From: Octopus sinensis
Lineage: Eukaryota
Direction: 5' to 3'
Length of the DNA stretch: 64,000 nucleotides
NCBI RefSeq assembly: GCF_006345805.1
Contig: NC_042998.1
Span: 207,700,001 to 207,764,000, forward strand
Position numbers and translations under genes: made by a program. Below, piece after piece: positions 163 to 37,815 of the stretch (positions are counted from its first letter, which is position 1; each line of letters opens with the position of its first letter). The notes beneath the pieces are model-generated. The model was not told where the DNA came from. It saw only the letters and a list, made by a program, of their open reading frames with translations, and did no database searches.

Positions 163-463
163 TCAAAATAAGTAACAAGAATGACTCCGGTAATTTGGTA
201 CGGTCGTTTCGTACTACATCATTTTATTAAATGTAAGTATTACAACAGTTTTAAAATGCTGAGCACTCATCAGCCAATTATAGAGGTTTTCCATTAATAC
301 AAAAATTGATATGAGAATTTTTGTATTAATGGAAAACCTCTATAATTGGCTGATGAGTGCTCAGCATTTTAAAACTGTTGTAATACTTACAACATTTAAT
401 AAAATGATGGAGTACGAAACGATCGTACCAAATTACCGGTGTCATTCTTGTTGCTTATTTTGA
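163..463. repeat. Fold-back palindrome (arms ~145 bp, 8-nt loop 308-315) of a Penelope-like pLTR fragment
   Basis: 163-307 is the reverse complement of 316-463 with about 4 substitutions and one 3-nt indel; unique tail 464-562 then (AT)n; (CA)n/AT on the left. Confidence 0.9.
344..434 (+). ncRNA. Type I hammerhead ribozyme (mirror copy on - strand at 192-279)
   Basis: aattgg-CTGATGA-GTGC...GTAC-GAAAC-GATC-GTA-ccaaatt: both core boxes, stem II GTGC/GTAC, palindromic GATC cap, stem I ttgg/ccaa. Confidence 0.8.
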
Positions 464-585
464 TTATAATCACCCCACGGATTTTTATGGATAACACCAT
501 TCAGAATTCTGGTGCATCTAAATTAAGTACCATATTCATTTGAATCTAAATTTTTGCTGAACGTATATATATATACATACACATA

Positions 586-810
586 TTCTTTTATTCTTTT
601 ACTTGTTTCAGGCATTTGATTGCGGCCATGCTGGAATACTGCTTTAAAGGGTGTTAGACGAAGAAATCGATCCCAAGACTTATTTCTTTGTAAACCTAGT
701 ACTTATTTTTATCGGTCTCTTTTGCCAAACTTCTAAGTTATGGGGGTCATAAACACATCAACATCGGTTGTCAAGCGATGGCGGAGGGACAAACACAAAC
801 ACACACACAC
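586..810 (-). mobile_element. tRNA-derived SINE family A, 3' half
   Basis: Matches the 3' part of the full copies at 4785-5195 and 41321-41725. Confidence 0.75.
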
Positions 811-1097
811 TGCGTTCTTGTTTATTTTTTTATATTAATATATACATATAGCGGCGCGCGCACACCTTGCCCACCTTATATATATATATAATTATATATA
901 TATATATATATATATATATATATATATATATATATATATATATATATATATATATATATATGTATTATATATATATATATATATATATATATATAATATA
1001 TTTATATATGAGGATAATATCGATATTTAAGTGTCGAAATTATCAAGTGGCCAGCATGAAAGAAATACCTTACAAAGGTAAAAAAATTTTTTTTAAC

Positions 1098-1883
1098 AAT
1101 TAAAAATGAGGGTGTCTAAAAGACACCAACATGCCGAAATAGCAGTCGAAACACTGAGTATAGTACCACGTTAAATGTTCATATCGCACCATGAGGTAAA
1201 GCGGAGGGACAAAACATACAAGCAAAAATTATTGAATAATTCAAGATCCAAGGATTTCTGGTTCTGCTTTAGATAAGCTTTACCGTCATCAATTGAATAT
1301 ATCAAGGGTACATAAATACAGATATATATATGCACAGCAAACGATATACTTACATATACGAGCGTTATCATACATACATATGCACGTATGGACACAGCCA
1401 GTCTGAATCGCCCGCCAAATCACCGCATAATCACGATATGGTTAAAATAAGCACCGCAGTGAATGACACTTAAATATCGATATTATCCTCATATATAAAT
1501 TTATATAATTCGTTATTATATTCACTGCGGTGCTTATTTTAACCATATCCTACTTATGCGGTAGTTTGGCGGGCGATTCAATGGCTGTGTCCATACGTGC
1601 ATATGTATGTATGTACGACGCTCGTATATGTAAGTATATCGTTTGCTGTGCATATATATTCTGTATTTATGTACCCTTGATATATTCAATTGATGACGCA
1701 AAGCTTATCTAAAGCAGAACCAGAAATCCTTGGATCTTGAATTATTCAATAATTTTTGCTTGTATGTTTTGTCCCTCCGCTTTACCTCATGGTGCGATAT
1801 GAACATTTAACGTGGTACTATAGTCAGTGTTTCGACTGCTATTTCGGCATGTTGGTGTCTTTTAGACACCCTCATTTTTAATT
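1098..1883. repeat. Fold-back palindrome (arms ~365 bp, spacer 1465-1519)
   Basis: 1098-1464 is the reverse complement of 1520-1883; right end abuts (AT)n. Confidence 0.9.
1684..1742 (+). ncRNA. Degenerate type I hammerhead-like motif (mirror on - strand at 1239-1298)
   Basis: attcaa-TTGATGA-c...a-GAAA-TCC-tt-GGA-TC-ttgaat: 6-bp stem I, 4-bp stem III; core has U3; stem II GGT/ACC intact only in the left arm. Confidence 0.55.
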
Positions 1884-2211
1884 ATATATATATATATATA
1901 TATAAATATAAATATATATACGATGGGCTTCTTCCAGTTTCCGTCTAGGAAGCAAGCTTATTACCACGCAGTCACGCCTGCGCCTATGTATATATTATAT
2001 ATGTGTGAGTGTGTGTGCGTGTGTGTGTGTTTGTATGTGTGTGTATGTGTGTGTGTAAACAAACTTTAAGTTAGTTCAAGTATGTAAGCGAAAAGTTTTA
2101 CTCCACGTTAAACTGCTGTGAAATTGCCTTTAGGAGTTAAAATATGTCATAACCATGTTTGAACTAATCAAAAGTTAGTTTATTTCTCATCGCTGCTTCG
2201 TGCTAATACGC

Positions 2212-2590
2212 CTATCTATCTATCTATCTATCTATCTATCTATCTATCTATCTATCTATCTATCTATCTATCTATCTATCTATCTATCTATCTATCTATC
2301 TATCTATCTATCTATCTATCTATCTATCTATCTATCTATCTATCTATCTATCTATCTATATATCTAGCTATCTATATATCTATCTATCTATCTATATCTA
2401 TCTATCTATATATCTATCTATCTATCTATCTATCTATCTATCTATCTATCTATCTATCTATCTATCTATCTATCTATCTATCTATCTATCTATCCGTCCA
2501 TCTATCTATCTATCTATCTATCTATCTATCTATCTATCTATCTATCTATCTATCTATCTACTATCTATCTATCTATCTGTCTGTCTGTCT
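2212..2590. repeat. (CTAT)n microsatellite
   Basis: Direct reading. Confidence 0.95.
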
Positions 2591-35251: not shown

Positions 35252-35396
35252 TAGTTATCGCCATACTAATATGGCATTCTTATAAAAATAAGAAAAAAGC
35301 TGACCGCTTATTTAGCTCCATGAGGCCATCGCCTTAATATTAGCTATTTGATATACAAACTTTTTATAAGAATGCCATATTAGTATGGCGATACTA
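35252..35396. mobile_element. MITE with TAG..CTA ends and ~37-bp TIRs
   Basis: tagttatcgccatactaatatggcattcttataaaaa and its reverse complement; ATAT on both sides. Confidence 0.75.
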
Positions 35397-35659
35397 ATAT
35401 TTTCCGGAACGCTGCCGTTGTTCTCTTTTAGAGAGACTTAGTAATTTTAATATTTCTATTATATATATAATATATATATATATATATATACAAATTGAGA
35501 TAGGGGTTGTAAATGCAACCCTCCATGGGATAACATATATCCAATATACTGCTAGGAAGAACCCACAAAGTTAATACATAAATGTTAATGATTGCGATGC
35601 AATCAATTCATTTGCTGTGTTATATGGGCAAAGGTAAAATGATTTACCACAAATTACTA

Positions 35660-36141
35660 ATACAAGATAAGAAAATGGAGAAATACATCTAAATCAAATA
35701 TCAATTACCAGATAATACTCAATCACATACTTTATTAAACCACCACATAAGAGACTGTAGGGTTAGATATAAAAAGCAGAACAAATCAGTGTACATAAAG
35801 GAATGTACATAAAAAAGTGTACATAAAAGAGTAATGTTGTATAATAAGTAGAATATATAAAAAAGAGAATATATATATAAGTAAATATAAATATAAGTAT
35901 AGATTTATATTTATATTTACTTATATATATATTCTCTTTTATATATATTCTACTTATTATACAACATTACTCTTTTATGTACACTTTTTTATGTACATTC
36001 CTTTATGTACACTGATTTGTTCTGCTTTTTATATCTAACCCTACAGTCTCTTATGTGGTGGTTTAATAAAGTATGTGATTGAGTATTATCTGGTAATTGA
36101 TATTGGATTTAGATGTATTTCTCCATTTTCTTATCTTGTAT
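35660..36141. repeat. Fold-back palindrome (arms ~237 bp, 8-nt loop 35897-35904), no HHR recognised
   Basis: Two mismatches seen between arms; (AT)n on the right, unique tail ~35490-35659 then (AT)n on the left. Confidence 0.92.
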
Positions 36142-36153
36142 ATATATATATAT

Positions 36154-37022
36154 ATACTAATAAAAAGGGTTCAGCAAAGAATTGCCTCACCACACACCGA
36201 AGTTCAGAAATAGCAGCCAAAAATCTTAGCCATTTCTTCTACTTTAAAAGGGTCTTCCAGAGAAACCAAAATACTTGAAGGTTATTCACACAGGCAGAGA
36301 GTAACGTAACGAAAATCAATCAATATCCGATCATCTATAGACGCGCGTTTCTGAATTAGGTTTTTACATAAAGAATATAAAAAAATATACTTTACTAACC
36401 ATATTCTTCATCAGTATGGATTTTCTGTAATAATCCGAAGGTACTAGAACATTTGAACGCATCTTTCCATATAACGGCTTTAAGCCGCTCATCTTCAATG
36501 CTAGTACCGCAAATTCAAAATATGAGTGAGAATCGCTGAGCCTCCCCCGCCTTTCCACGTGTGTCTTCAAGTAAAATGCTACAGAAAAAAATCAGCAGCA
36601 TGTTCTCAGGGAGAAAGTTCTAAGGCGGGGAAGGCTAAGCGATTCTCACTCATATTTTGAATTTGGCGGTACTAGCATTGAAGATGAGCGGCTTAAAGCC
36701 GTTATATGGAAAGATGCGTTCAAATGTTCTAGTACCTTCGGATTATTACAGAAAATCCATACTGATGAAGAATATGGTTAGTAAAGTATATTTTTTTATA
36801 TTCTTTATGTAAAAACCTAATTCAGAAACGCGCGTCTATAGATGATCGGATATTGATTGATTTTCGTTACGTTACTCTCTGCCTGTGTGAATAACCTTCA
36901 AGTATTTTGGTTTCTCTGGAAGACCCTTTTAAAGTAGAAGAAATGGCTAAGATTTTTGGCTGCTATTTCTGAACTTCGGTGTGTGGTGAGGCAATTCTTT
37001 GCTGAACCCTTTTTATTAGTAT
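36154..37022. repeat. Fold-back palindrome (arms ~400 bp, spacer ~36553-36621)
   Basis: Arms look identical apart from about 3 differences near the spacer; tail 37023-37127; (AT)n on both sides. Confidence 0.95.
36755..36843 (+). ncRNA. Type I hammerhead ribozyme (mirror on - strand at 36333-36421)
   Basis: atccata-CTGATGA-A-GAAT...ATTC-A-GAAAC-GCGC-GTC-tatagat; GUC cleavage triplet, palindromic GCGC cap. Confidence 0.85.
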
Positions 37023-37490
37023 TACTAAAATTTACTGTGTAACGGCCCTGTTTTCATACCGAATTCTACTTGGTGAAGTTTATTGATTACTTCTTAATTA
37101 ATTAATTTTACCCTTTGTTATTATTGATATATATATATACACACACACACACACAAGCACGTATCACGTGAGGTTAGAGATGGGAGCGATGACCTCCCCT
37201 CGAAAATACTAATCAGACACAGAATGTGTGTCGTTAGCCAGCTGGAGGAGATGTCTTCCTGGGACTATAAACAACAGTAACACTGTCCTGTATTGGACGC
37301 CACACTTAGTTGGCAAATATATGTTACGATTCCGTACCGCTACTGTTTATATCTCGCCCAGAGATTTAATATAACATATCTCTTTCTCTTATATATATAT
37401 ATATATAATAATAAATATTAGGGAATGAATCCAAAATTACAGGGAAAAATCAGAGTTAGGGTTAAATCCAATTTTATAGTAAAATATTAT

Positions 37491-37815
37491 ATAATATAAT
37501 TCGAGACAAAACCACTATTTTAAAATCAAACAAGGAAAGACTTAATCAATACATAAAATTTTAATATAAATTAAATAAACCGCCACTACAATTGCTTCCT
37601 GTCTGCTACTGACATTCTTCAGGTGGATTTTCGATCTTCTAATCAGTATCAAATTATGATACTGATTAGAAGATCGAAAATCCACCTGAAGAATGTCAGT
37701 AGCAGACAGGAAACAATTGTAGTGGCGGTTTACTTAATTTATATTAAAATTTTATGTATTGATTAAGTCTTTCCTTGTTTGATTTTAAAATAGTGGTTTT
37801 GTCTCGATATATTAT
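37491..37815. repeat. Fold-back palindrome (arms ~155 bp, 5-nt loop 37652-37656)
   Basis: Two substitutions between arms; (AT)n on the right, tail ~37410-37490 then (AT)n on the left. Confidence 0.92.
37682..37725 (+). ncRNA. Type I hammerhead ribozyme (mirror at 37583-37626 has GAAGC)
   Basis: ccac-CTGAAGA-A-TGTC-agtagca-GACA-G-GAAAC-AATT-GTA-gtgg. Confidence 0.8.

Follow-up and report, generated by a model that had tools for sequence, protein, structure and literature searches.

The architecture of Penelope-like element (PLE) insertions was reportedly laid out, for the endonuclease-positive Penelope/Poseidon, Neptune and Naiad, by Evgen'ev and Arkhipova in 2005. Its features are a copy that is inverted on the 5' side, a tail confined to one end and a bias towards microsatellite or (TA)n targets (Arkhipova, 2013, PMC3846280; Craig, 2021, PMC8557442), and in head-to-head inverted pLTRs (pseudo-long terminal repeats), one of which carries the tail, the palindromes at the junction were read as products of self-priming (Arkhipova, 2013). 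Here we compare this architecture with seven fold-back units, most of them carrying predicted hammerhead ribozymes, in 64 kb of Octopus sinensis DNA (assembly GCF_006345805.1, contig NC_042998.1, positions 207,700,001 to 207,764,000; hereafter the window, whose first letter is position 1). In Octopus vulgaris, PLEs are an annotated order of transposable elements with 30 'Penelope' families.

Minimal hammerheads are a further feature of PLEs. Dual minimal hammerheads on opposite strands, 100-700 bp apart, were reported in Schistosoma, and the traits of PLE hammerheads include an unpaired nucleotide after A9, a reduced, palindromic helix III, and helices I and II that vary in sequence but stay paired (Cervera and de la Pena, 2014, PMC4209133). 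More recently, purified Poseidon protein was found to cleave and extend both target strands, with AT-rich DNA preferred, and to start reverse transcription at two neighbouring sites inside the RNA, the interval between them constituting the tail; the hammerhead, ~90 nt upstream of the start site, was dispensable for insertion (Frangieh, 2024, PMC11167929). The PLE transposition cycle is largely obscure, and the 2024 biochemistry leaves the origin of the complex genomic structures unexplained.

Two other systems invite comparison. Non-LTR (non-long terminal repeat) retrozymes, thought to derive from PLE pLTRs, resemble the units of the window in being short, non-coding and low in GC and in carrying a type I hammerhead (Cervera and de la Pena, 2020, PMC7229834; Li et al., 2026, preprint, 10.64898/2026.07.22.740005). 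They are, however, head-to-tail tandem repeats that give circular RNAs, whereas the copies in the window are inverted pairs or solo, and no tandem hammerhead units of 170-400 nt were found within the units. In LINE-1 (long interspersed element 1), twin priming is said to have been described by Ostertag and Kazazian in 2001, with the second strand priming reverse transcription internally on the RNA so that a 5' segment becomes inverted. Internal priming by the second target strand and the inverted 5' segment would be common to both cases, but LINE-1 inverts without duplication, different parts of the RNA being copied, while the two arms of each unit in the window copy the same segment.

Anatomy and (TA)n setting of the fold-back units

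When each region was compared by blastn with its reverse complement, and repeats were searched for besides, we recovered all seven palindromes (P1 to P7, from left to right) that a preliminary description of the window had listed, with an arm complementarity of 85-99%. Every unit follows a layout of the kind that had been proposed for them, here (TA)n, arm, loop, arm, one-sided tail and (TA)n, and in 7/7 units the arms form a head-to-head inverted copy on the 5' side, as in PLE insertions. The tail measures 35-169 nt and lies at the right in P1, P4 and P6 and at the left in P2, P3, P5 and P7. Several unrelated families had been proposed, and indeed P1 and P4 are the only related pair (73%); the other units share nothing detectable by blastn, nor are terminal sequences common to unrelated families.

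Twelve of the 14 outer ends adjoin a run of (TA) with at least four repeats and the other two adjoin imperfect TA tracts, while 5.7% of the positions in the window lie equally near such a run (binomial P about 1e-13), so that the AT-rich or microsatellite target of PLE insertions recurs here. At the junction between short arm and target, 3 nt (TAT) can be assigned to either element or repeat in P3, P5 and P6, and in P1 and P4 a TATA lies 1-2 nt further out; with about 0.5 nt of overlap expected by chance, this is only suggestive.

The diverged insertions P1 and P4 can be aligned over a stretch that begins ~15 nt upstream of the hammerhead and closes with the tail, and since their tails are homologous, the tail is part of the element; a one-end, element-encoded tail of the PLE kind is found in 7/7 units. 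One homologous column of this alignment marks the end of both short arms, directly before TATAATCACCCCAC and beside an AC-rich box. Judged from the aligned sequences, this agreement indicates that the element itself fixes the end, comparable to the two start sites of reverse transcription described by Frangieh (2024), and a second initiation site would fit better than an arbitrary fold-back stop. In P2, the central positions 1465-1504 match, at 97.5% identity, the reverse-complemented stretch 996-1035, which comprises the tail end and its TA-rich flank, and the repeat includes the distinctive flank stretch TATATAAAT. It is oriented as the short arm, thereby forming a mini head-to-tail junction of 36-40 nt before that arm. 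The P2 arms have the same 5' end position on both sides of the central insert, and they have the appearance of full-length units, with ~366 nt and a further 88 nt of tail, rather than products of random truncation with snap-back.

The individual units are as follows. P1 (163-563, +) consists of a short arm (163-307), an 8-nt loop (308-315), a long arm (316-463) and a tail (464-563); its palindrome (158/163-468) is 100% complementary over the inner 76 nt, and the unit lies between (CA)n(TA)n, ending at 160, and (TA)n at 564-575. P4 (16836-17580, +) has arms at 16836-17023 (short) and 17278-17464 (long) and a tail at 17465-17580, between (TA)n at 16761-16835 and 17581-17625; the palindrome (16838-17023 and 17278-17464) is 94.8% complementary around a non-palindromic spacer of 254 nt (17024-17277). 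P2 (1010-1882, -) has its tail at 1010-1097, the long arm at 1098-1463, a 53-nt insert at 1464-1516 and the short arm at 1517-1882, the palindrome (1098-1883) reaching 92.5% over 798 nt with (TA)n on both sides. P3 (9606-9899, -) comprises a tail (9606-9640), a long arm (9641-9788), an 18-nt loop (9789-9806) and a short arm (9807-9899) between (TA)n at 9583-9605 and 9900-9911; the palindrome (9641-9902) is 85-87% complementary, the right (short) arm having lost 49-53 nt by deletion.

P5 (35491-36141, -) carries a tail at 35491-35659, a long arm at 35660-35896, an 8-nt loop at 35897-35904 and a short arm at 35905-36141, and its palindrome (35660-36141) is 98-99% complementary. It shares (TA)9 at 36140-36156 with P6 (36154-37127, +), in which the short arm (36154-36520) and the long arm (36656-37022), followed by a tail (37023-37127), enclose a centre (36521-36655). 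The outer 367 nt of the P6 palindrome (36154-37022) are 99% complementary around an imperfect centre of about 135 nt, and none of the 14 arm mismatches is more than 50 nt away from the centre, which was either never a perfect palindrome or later revised. P7 (37408-37825, -) has its tail from 37408 to about 37483, a long arm to 37651, a 5-nt loop (37652-37656) and a short arm from 37657 to about 37825, between (TA)n at 37390-37407 and 37826-37878; its palindrome (37475/84-37822/33) is 93-96% complementary, with boundaries uncertain by ~10 nt because the outer arm ends are TA-rich. At least four unrelated insertions, P5, P6, a 235-bp element (37158-37389) and P7, follow each other within 2.4 kb (35462-37878), separated by short (TA)n/(CA)n remnants only, and this stretch seems to be one microsatellite tract that has served as a repeated landing pad.

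An eighth palindrome was noticed at 31880-32134, where (TA)n is followed by a 51-nt tail, an arm (31931-32005), a loop of ~23-35 nt, a second arm (32040-32114), 20 nt and (GT)n; no hammerhead was found in it, in which it resembles P5. Over the window as a whole no Rfam family reached its gathering threshold, and at the E-value threshold microRNA-hairpin models, which matched palindromes and microsatellites, dominated the output. Among them, microRNA-precursor models (MIR5048, MIR5185, MIR837, MIR8007) reach E values of 1e-11 to 1e-19 on the centres of palindromes, with matches at 36444-36732, 37599-37709 and 204-420, all under the gathering thresholds. Units of this kind are easily mislabelled in annotation as microRNA hairpins or genes, or as miniature inverted-repeat transposable elements (MITEs).

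Predicted hammerhead motifs

Two structure descriptors were used to search the window for hammerheads. The first combined CUGANGA, GAAA and H with a short helix III and with minimum lengths of 3 bp for helix II and 4 bp for helix I, and returned 6 sites against 0.19 expected from dinucleotide shuffles; the second, in which a self-complementary A15.1...U16.1 segment (a palindromic helix III) was required instead, returned 8 against 0.135 expected. The sites of the second descriptor are in P1 (+350), the long arm of P3 (-9762), P4 (-16951), both arms of P6, P7 (+37686) and two solo elements (-9474 and -53053), which all have the type I core (C3-A9, G12-A14, A15.1-U16.1, H17, open helix I). A canonical minimal type I core is hence present in at least one arm of five of the seven palindromes (P1, P3, P4, P6, P7). 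P2, in which C3 is U and helix II is unclosed, was left out of this count for both reasons, and no motif was found in P5 by the descriptor search. The preliminary description had counted six type I hammerheads, of which five stand as canonical and the sixth is the C3-to-U relic of P2. Its assertion that they read outward holds for every motif in the palindromes: all five canonical motifs and the P2 variant point away from the centre and towards the tail, which also bears out its placement of the inversion on the 5' side of the element. The predicted cut sites are 37-186 nt away from the short-arm end, and the distance to the tail end is 124-291 nt.

The motifs agree with PLE minimal hammerheads (Cervera and de la Pena, 2014) in the CUGANGA...GAAA core, the short helix I and the sequence diversity between families, helices I and II having a different sequence in each family with the pairing kept (helix II is GAGC/GCUC in the solo element at 53053). 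An unpaired nucleotide follows A9 in P3, P6, P7 and the solo element at 53053. Helix III, of 0-2 bp in PLE hammerheads, is here reduced to 2 bp (AC/GU) with a 4-nt palindromic loop (GAUC, GCGC, AAUU or GGCC) or to a palindromic 15.2-16.2 pair (UA, CG), as in the segments ACGAUCGU, ACGCGCGU, ACAAUUGU and AUGGCCAU, a likeness that implies action as dimers. Because helix III is so reduced, the 15.1-16.1 segment forms a palindrome of 4-8 nt that would be able to pair two molecules, and dimers are predicted to be 4.7-13 kcal/mol more stable than two monomers; for P1, for P7 and for the 9474 solo element, an intermolecular helix III is part of the predicted dimer fold. The motifs differ from their PLE counterparts in the helix II insertions of 45-55 nt in P1, P4 and P6 and in the G10.1-C11.1 pair (counted after the unpaired nucleotide), which only P1, P3, P6 and the solo element at 53053 possess.

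In P1 the predicted hammerhead (344-437, +) is located in the long arm, with helix I AAUUGG/CCAAAUU, CUGAUGA at 350-356, helix II GUGCUC/GAGUAC closing a 45-nt loop, GAAAC-GAUC-GUA and a predicted cut after 427; a mirror copy in the left arm has CUGAUGA at 273-267 (-) and a GACC loop. The P4 motif (16864-16956, -) is intact in the short arm (UUUAG/CUAAA, CUGAUGA at 16951, a 7-bp helix II, GAAAC-GAUC-GUA, predicted cut after 16874), and its copy in the long (right) arm at 17350 is mutated to GAAC. The long-arm motif of P3 (9718-9772, -) comprises helix I GAUAU/AUAUC, CUGAAGA followed by an unpaired A, GGAAU/AUUUC as helix II and GAAA-UA-U-C, with a predicted cut after 9730; the right-arm copy at 9833 has lost its 3' half by deletion. 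P6 carries identical copies in both arms, one at 36755-36846 (+) with helix I AUCCAUA/UAUAGAU, which has a single C.A mismatch, CUGAUGA at 36762 followed by an unpaired A, GAAU/AUUC, GAAAC-GCGC-GUC and a predicted cut after 36836, and the mirror copy at 36414 (-). The compact motif of P7 (37681-37730, +) lies in the short arm, with CCAC/GUGG, CUGAAGA at 37686, an A, UGUC/GACA, GAAAC-AAUU-GUA and a predicted cut after 37721, and the copy in the long (left) arm at 37622 (-) is mutated to GAAGC. The outward-reading relic of P2 (1690-1737, +) consists of UUGAUGA, GAAAU-CC-UU-GG-AUC and helix I AUUCAA/UUGAAU, with a mirror copy at 1292 (-).

The AUG of CUGAUGA in P1 opens a 36-codon frame (344-463, +) whose stop falls exactly at the boundary of arm and tail. 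We considered an overlap of the hammerhead with the start of an open reading frame (ORF) as in Poseidon_Ac, and dropped it since the frame is not conserved in P4; the overlap is probably a coincidence.

Proposed integration routes for the palindromic units

The PLE origin put forward in the preliminary description agrees with every structural hallmark tested, namely the head-to-head copy, the tail at one end, the minimal dimer-type hammerhead shortly upstream of the 3' end and insertion into AT-rich or microsatellite DNA, in this case (TA)n. PLE insertions likewise show palindromes where the inverted copies meet, and mini head-to-tail junctions, the latter seen here in P2. The units depart from these in being 0.3-1 kb long and non-coding, without an RT (reverse transcriptase)/GIY-YIG frame or a full pLTR-ORF-pLTR structure in the window, and the (TA)n bias, published for hammerhead-less Naiads and hypothesised for Neptune, is seen here in hammerhead-bearing families. 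As no PLE reading frame, which would combine a telomerase-like RT with a GIY-YIG endonuclease, is present in the window, the copies are non-coding and at most non-autonomous or truncated PLE derivatives, and their membership would be argued from architecture and ribozyme type rather than from sequence shared with an RT/GIY-YIG element. Neither the layout nor the idea of self-priming is new: self-priming was inferred in 2013 (PMC3846280) and paired hammerheads on opposite strands were reported in 2014 (PMC4209133), and the window is a clear new example of this known phenomenon.

We consider it probable, if far from settled, that the units are integration products of short non-coding hammerhead retroelements, mobilised by a PLE RT/GIY-YIG protein and inserted into (TA)n by a route in which both target strands are primed. 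A unit would then be two copies of the 3' part of the element joined head to head, with a single copy running on into the tail. The enzyme would nick both strands of an AT-rich target, and each 3'-OH would prime reverse transcription. On one strand, synthesis would begin at the downstream initiation site and yield the copy with the tail; on the other it would begin at the upstream, element-defined site and yield the copy without it. Both complementary DNAs (cDNAs) would run towards the 5' end of the RNA, where they would be joined when one growing strand switched template to the other cDNA, leaving a loop of a few nt or, where the two ends differ, a longer spacer. The outward reading of the hammerhead would follow from its position in each of the head-to-head copies, whose end lies 37-186 nt further downstream. 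From the observed anatomy, motif statistics and conserved short-arm end, we infer by analogy that the same steps as those published made these copies, and in like manner how their 5' ends were joined.

Several points weigh against this two-strand priming route or against its link to PLEs. Everything counted and folded here comes from a single 64-kb window. The hammerhead claim rests on the descriptors, since the Rfam hammerhead models matched no motif, whether over the whole window at the gathering threshold or on short sub-regions at E of 10 or less; these models appear not to cover minimal variants, which were first found with structure descriptors. Moreover, the motifs are type I minimal hammerheads by prediction, and so is their self-cleavage. 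The tails, of 35-169 nt, compare with 30-40 nt in the literature on PLEs, and pLTR-type direct repeats are absent from P1 and P4-P7, the sole head-to-tail copy being that of P2. A tblastn search with the Poseidon_Ac protein against the window and a second O. sinensis locus (described below) gave nothing below E=1, and the link to an autonomous partner would therefore be one of analogy. Pfam searches of concatenated ORFs of at least 70 aa returned no match either, but were uninformative, as they also missed visible mariner fragments; the 3' module of P1/P4 had 0 matches in one metagenome pattern scan. Independent choice of start sites should, in addition, produce tail/tail and no-tail/no-tail units, whereas 7/7 units are asymmetric, and the tail asymmetry must for this reason be built into the mechanism. 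Finally, the 5-8 nt loops of P1, P5 and P7 are what snap-back in cis predicts.

That last alternative, in which a randomly truncated, target-primed cDNA folds back, primes its own second strand and is joined as a hairpin across a (TA)n break, corresponds to the route favoured in the preliminary description, and we regard it as rather unlikely, though still a serious rival. It offers the simplest account of the loops of 5-8 nt in P1, P5 and P7; the 18-nt loop of P3 also speaks for it, as do the near-identical arms of two young copies, P5 and P6. Such palindromes, where PLE copies meet head to head, were interpreted in this way before (Arkhipova, 2013), and the TAT or TATA microhomology with the target at the short-arm end (P3, P5 and P6, and offset by 1-2 nt in P1 and P4) could mark the site of joining. 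Nevertheless, fold-back synthesis should run through the tail, while 7/7 units stop before it, P1 and P4 at the same homologous position. The P2 centre is a 53-nt insert with a second 3' terminus between arms that share one 5' end, P4 has its 254-nt non-palindromic spacer, and self-priming on a sense template would yield tail-to-tail rather than head-to-head copies (Arkhipova, 2013). A single 5'-truncated cDNA that snaps back, as proposed earlier, is in part contradicted by the common stop of P1 and P4, the P2 centre, the P4 spacer and the hammerhead-less P5. The common stop, the shared 5' end and mini-junction of P2 and the hammerhead-less P5 fit two-strand priming at least as well, and the 5-8 nt loops make it more likely that synthesis at the 5' ends switched in some way to a cDNA strand as template. 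Since P5 and the similar palindrome at 31931-32114 lack a hammerhead, the ribozyme is not required for a palindromic product.

A different role of the ribozyme, which we hold to be improbable, is that the dimer-forming hammerhead pairs two template RNAs through its 8-nt palindromic helix III, and that a dimeric RT/endonuclease copies both into one (TA)n break. If true, head-to-head integration would be the default product and the hammerhead would serve to pair templates, not to cleave RNA, an activity that insertion did not need (Frangieh, 2024).

Three further explanations are unlikely. TA is the target of Tc1/mariner transposases, and the units might be fold-back or MITE-type DNA transposons moved by such enzymes, with the hammerheads as passengers. 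Tc1/mariner remnants do occur in the window, along with genuine MITE-like palindromes (35245-35403 and 63164-63398), one of them beside TA-rich DNA. A MITE, however, would have symmetrical terminal inverted repeats with a target-site duplication, a trait that (TA)n would mask, and no extra one-sided sequence; all seven units are asymmetric, with a one-sided element tail conserved between P1 and P4. The hammerheads are always outward (5/5 canonical and the P2 variant), three solo, non-palindromic hammerhead elements lie in microsatellites as well, and the families have no terminal sequences in common, all of which makes this explanation highly improbable.

(TA)n tracts extrude cruciforms and break, and a solo insertion could later have been inverted and duplicated at the DNA level, by template switching during replication or by repair of a hairpin-capped break at (TA)n. 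The restriction of the P6 mismatches to the central 100 nt resembles a later revision of the palindrome centre, as this would allow. The duplicated segment, on the other hand, always ends at the boundary of element and target minus the tail, never includes flanking unique DNA and has the same end point in P1 and P4, and seven independent events within 38 kb would be needed, so that we give the idea very little credence. An artefact, with fold-back chimeric long reads collapsed into the consensus, could be suspected from the 98-99% identity of the P5 and P6 arms and from the difficulty of assembling palindromes in microsatellites, a problem noted by Craig (2021), but is barely credible because the arms of the units differ by 1-15% through substitutions and indels, including the 49-53 nt deletion of P3, and because asymmetric tails, motif orientation and a conserved end point are coherent between units.

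Whichever way the 5' ends were joined, natural units of this kind are a record of many integrations: they are short, fall into several families, and have clean (TA)n limits, one-sided tails and defined short-arm ends. A genome-wide survey in one cephalopod could tell whether the tail corresponds to two start sites on opposite strands and whether the 5' meeting point is defined or random.

Solo elements and other repeats of the window

Three hammerhead-bearing insertions in the window are solo copies, all of them in microsatellites and 2/3 with at least one end in (TA)n. The element at 9311-9482 (-) lies between two (TA)n runs and has CUGACGA at 9474, GAAAU-GGCC-AUA and a predicted cut after 9406. 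That at 52919-53113 (-), whose 3' end adjoins (TA)n at 52856-52918, reads CUGACGA-A-GAGC-UCC-GCUC-GAAA-CG-U-U; its helix I is only 2 bp, and its GAAACGU core is the same as in the Poseidon_Ac hammerhead. A weaker candidate at 45040-45384 (-), between (GT)n runs, has a 10-nt palindromic helix III, AUCACGUGAU, and a weak helix II. Of the nine hammerhead-bearing insertions, six are palindromic, with P2 counted, and three solo, with this weak motif counted; the preliminary description had called the palindrome the usual product, which is correct for this window only.

A MITE-like family (35245-35403, 63164-63398 and 63566-63636), with one copy beside TA-rich DNA, shares the terminal inverted repeat TAGTTATCGCCAWRCTAAYATGGCA..., and its occurrence shows that fold-backs of genuine DNA transposons are found alongside the hammerhead units. 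The window is AT-rich, with a GC content of 26-46% along its length, and abounds in microsatellites, (TA)n runs of at least 12 nt making up 3.5% of it; Tc1/mariner remnants and modules resembling short interspersed elements (SINEs) are also present. Its only RT, according to Pfam searches of the 10 longest ORFs, belongs to a LINE at 26.7-29.7 kb (26700-29700, +), which is 5'-truncated and retains the end of the apurinic/apyrimidinic (AP) endonuclease as well as the RT. The proteins that match this RT best do so at only 65-75% identity and belong to animals of distant phyla, namely sea cucumber, periwinkle, fish, turtle and coral; the LINE family is widespread and perhaps horizontally transferred.

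A protein search with the Tc1 copy led to one O. sinensis protein, whose locus covers 20.8 kb of chromosome CM016861.1. This locus matches the window in its SINE-like modules (72-89% identity) and in the Tc1 copy (80-82%); no hammerhead and no tight palindrome were found in its 20.8 kb, and the search with its Tc1 protein found no further octopus loci. We also considered the inverted copies at 41319-41717 and 42253-42662 (91%), on either side of 535 bp, as a further fold-back case and rejected them, as they are two opposed copies of a composite unit made up of a transfer RNA-like SINE, (TA)n(TG)n and a second module. The same composite was found again across the window (e.g., at 589-1029) and in the O. 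sinensis locus, so that many microsatellites of the window are internal repeat parts. At 17600-22500, finally, a compound tetra- and dinucleotide array of ~5 kb, with ATGC/ATGT/ATAC-type units, shows an extreme strand asymmetry, with a GC skew down to -0.96, and attracts dozens of spurious mir-297-type Rfam matches.

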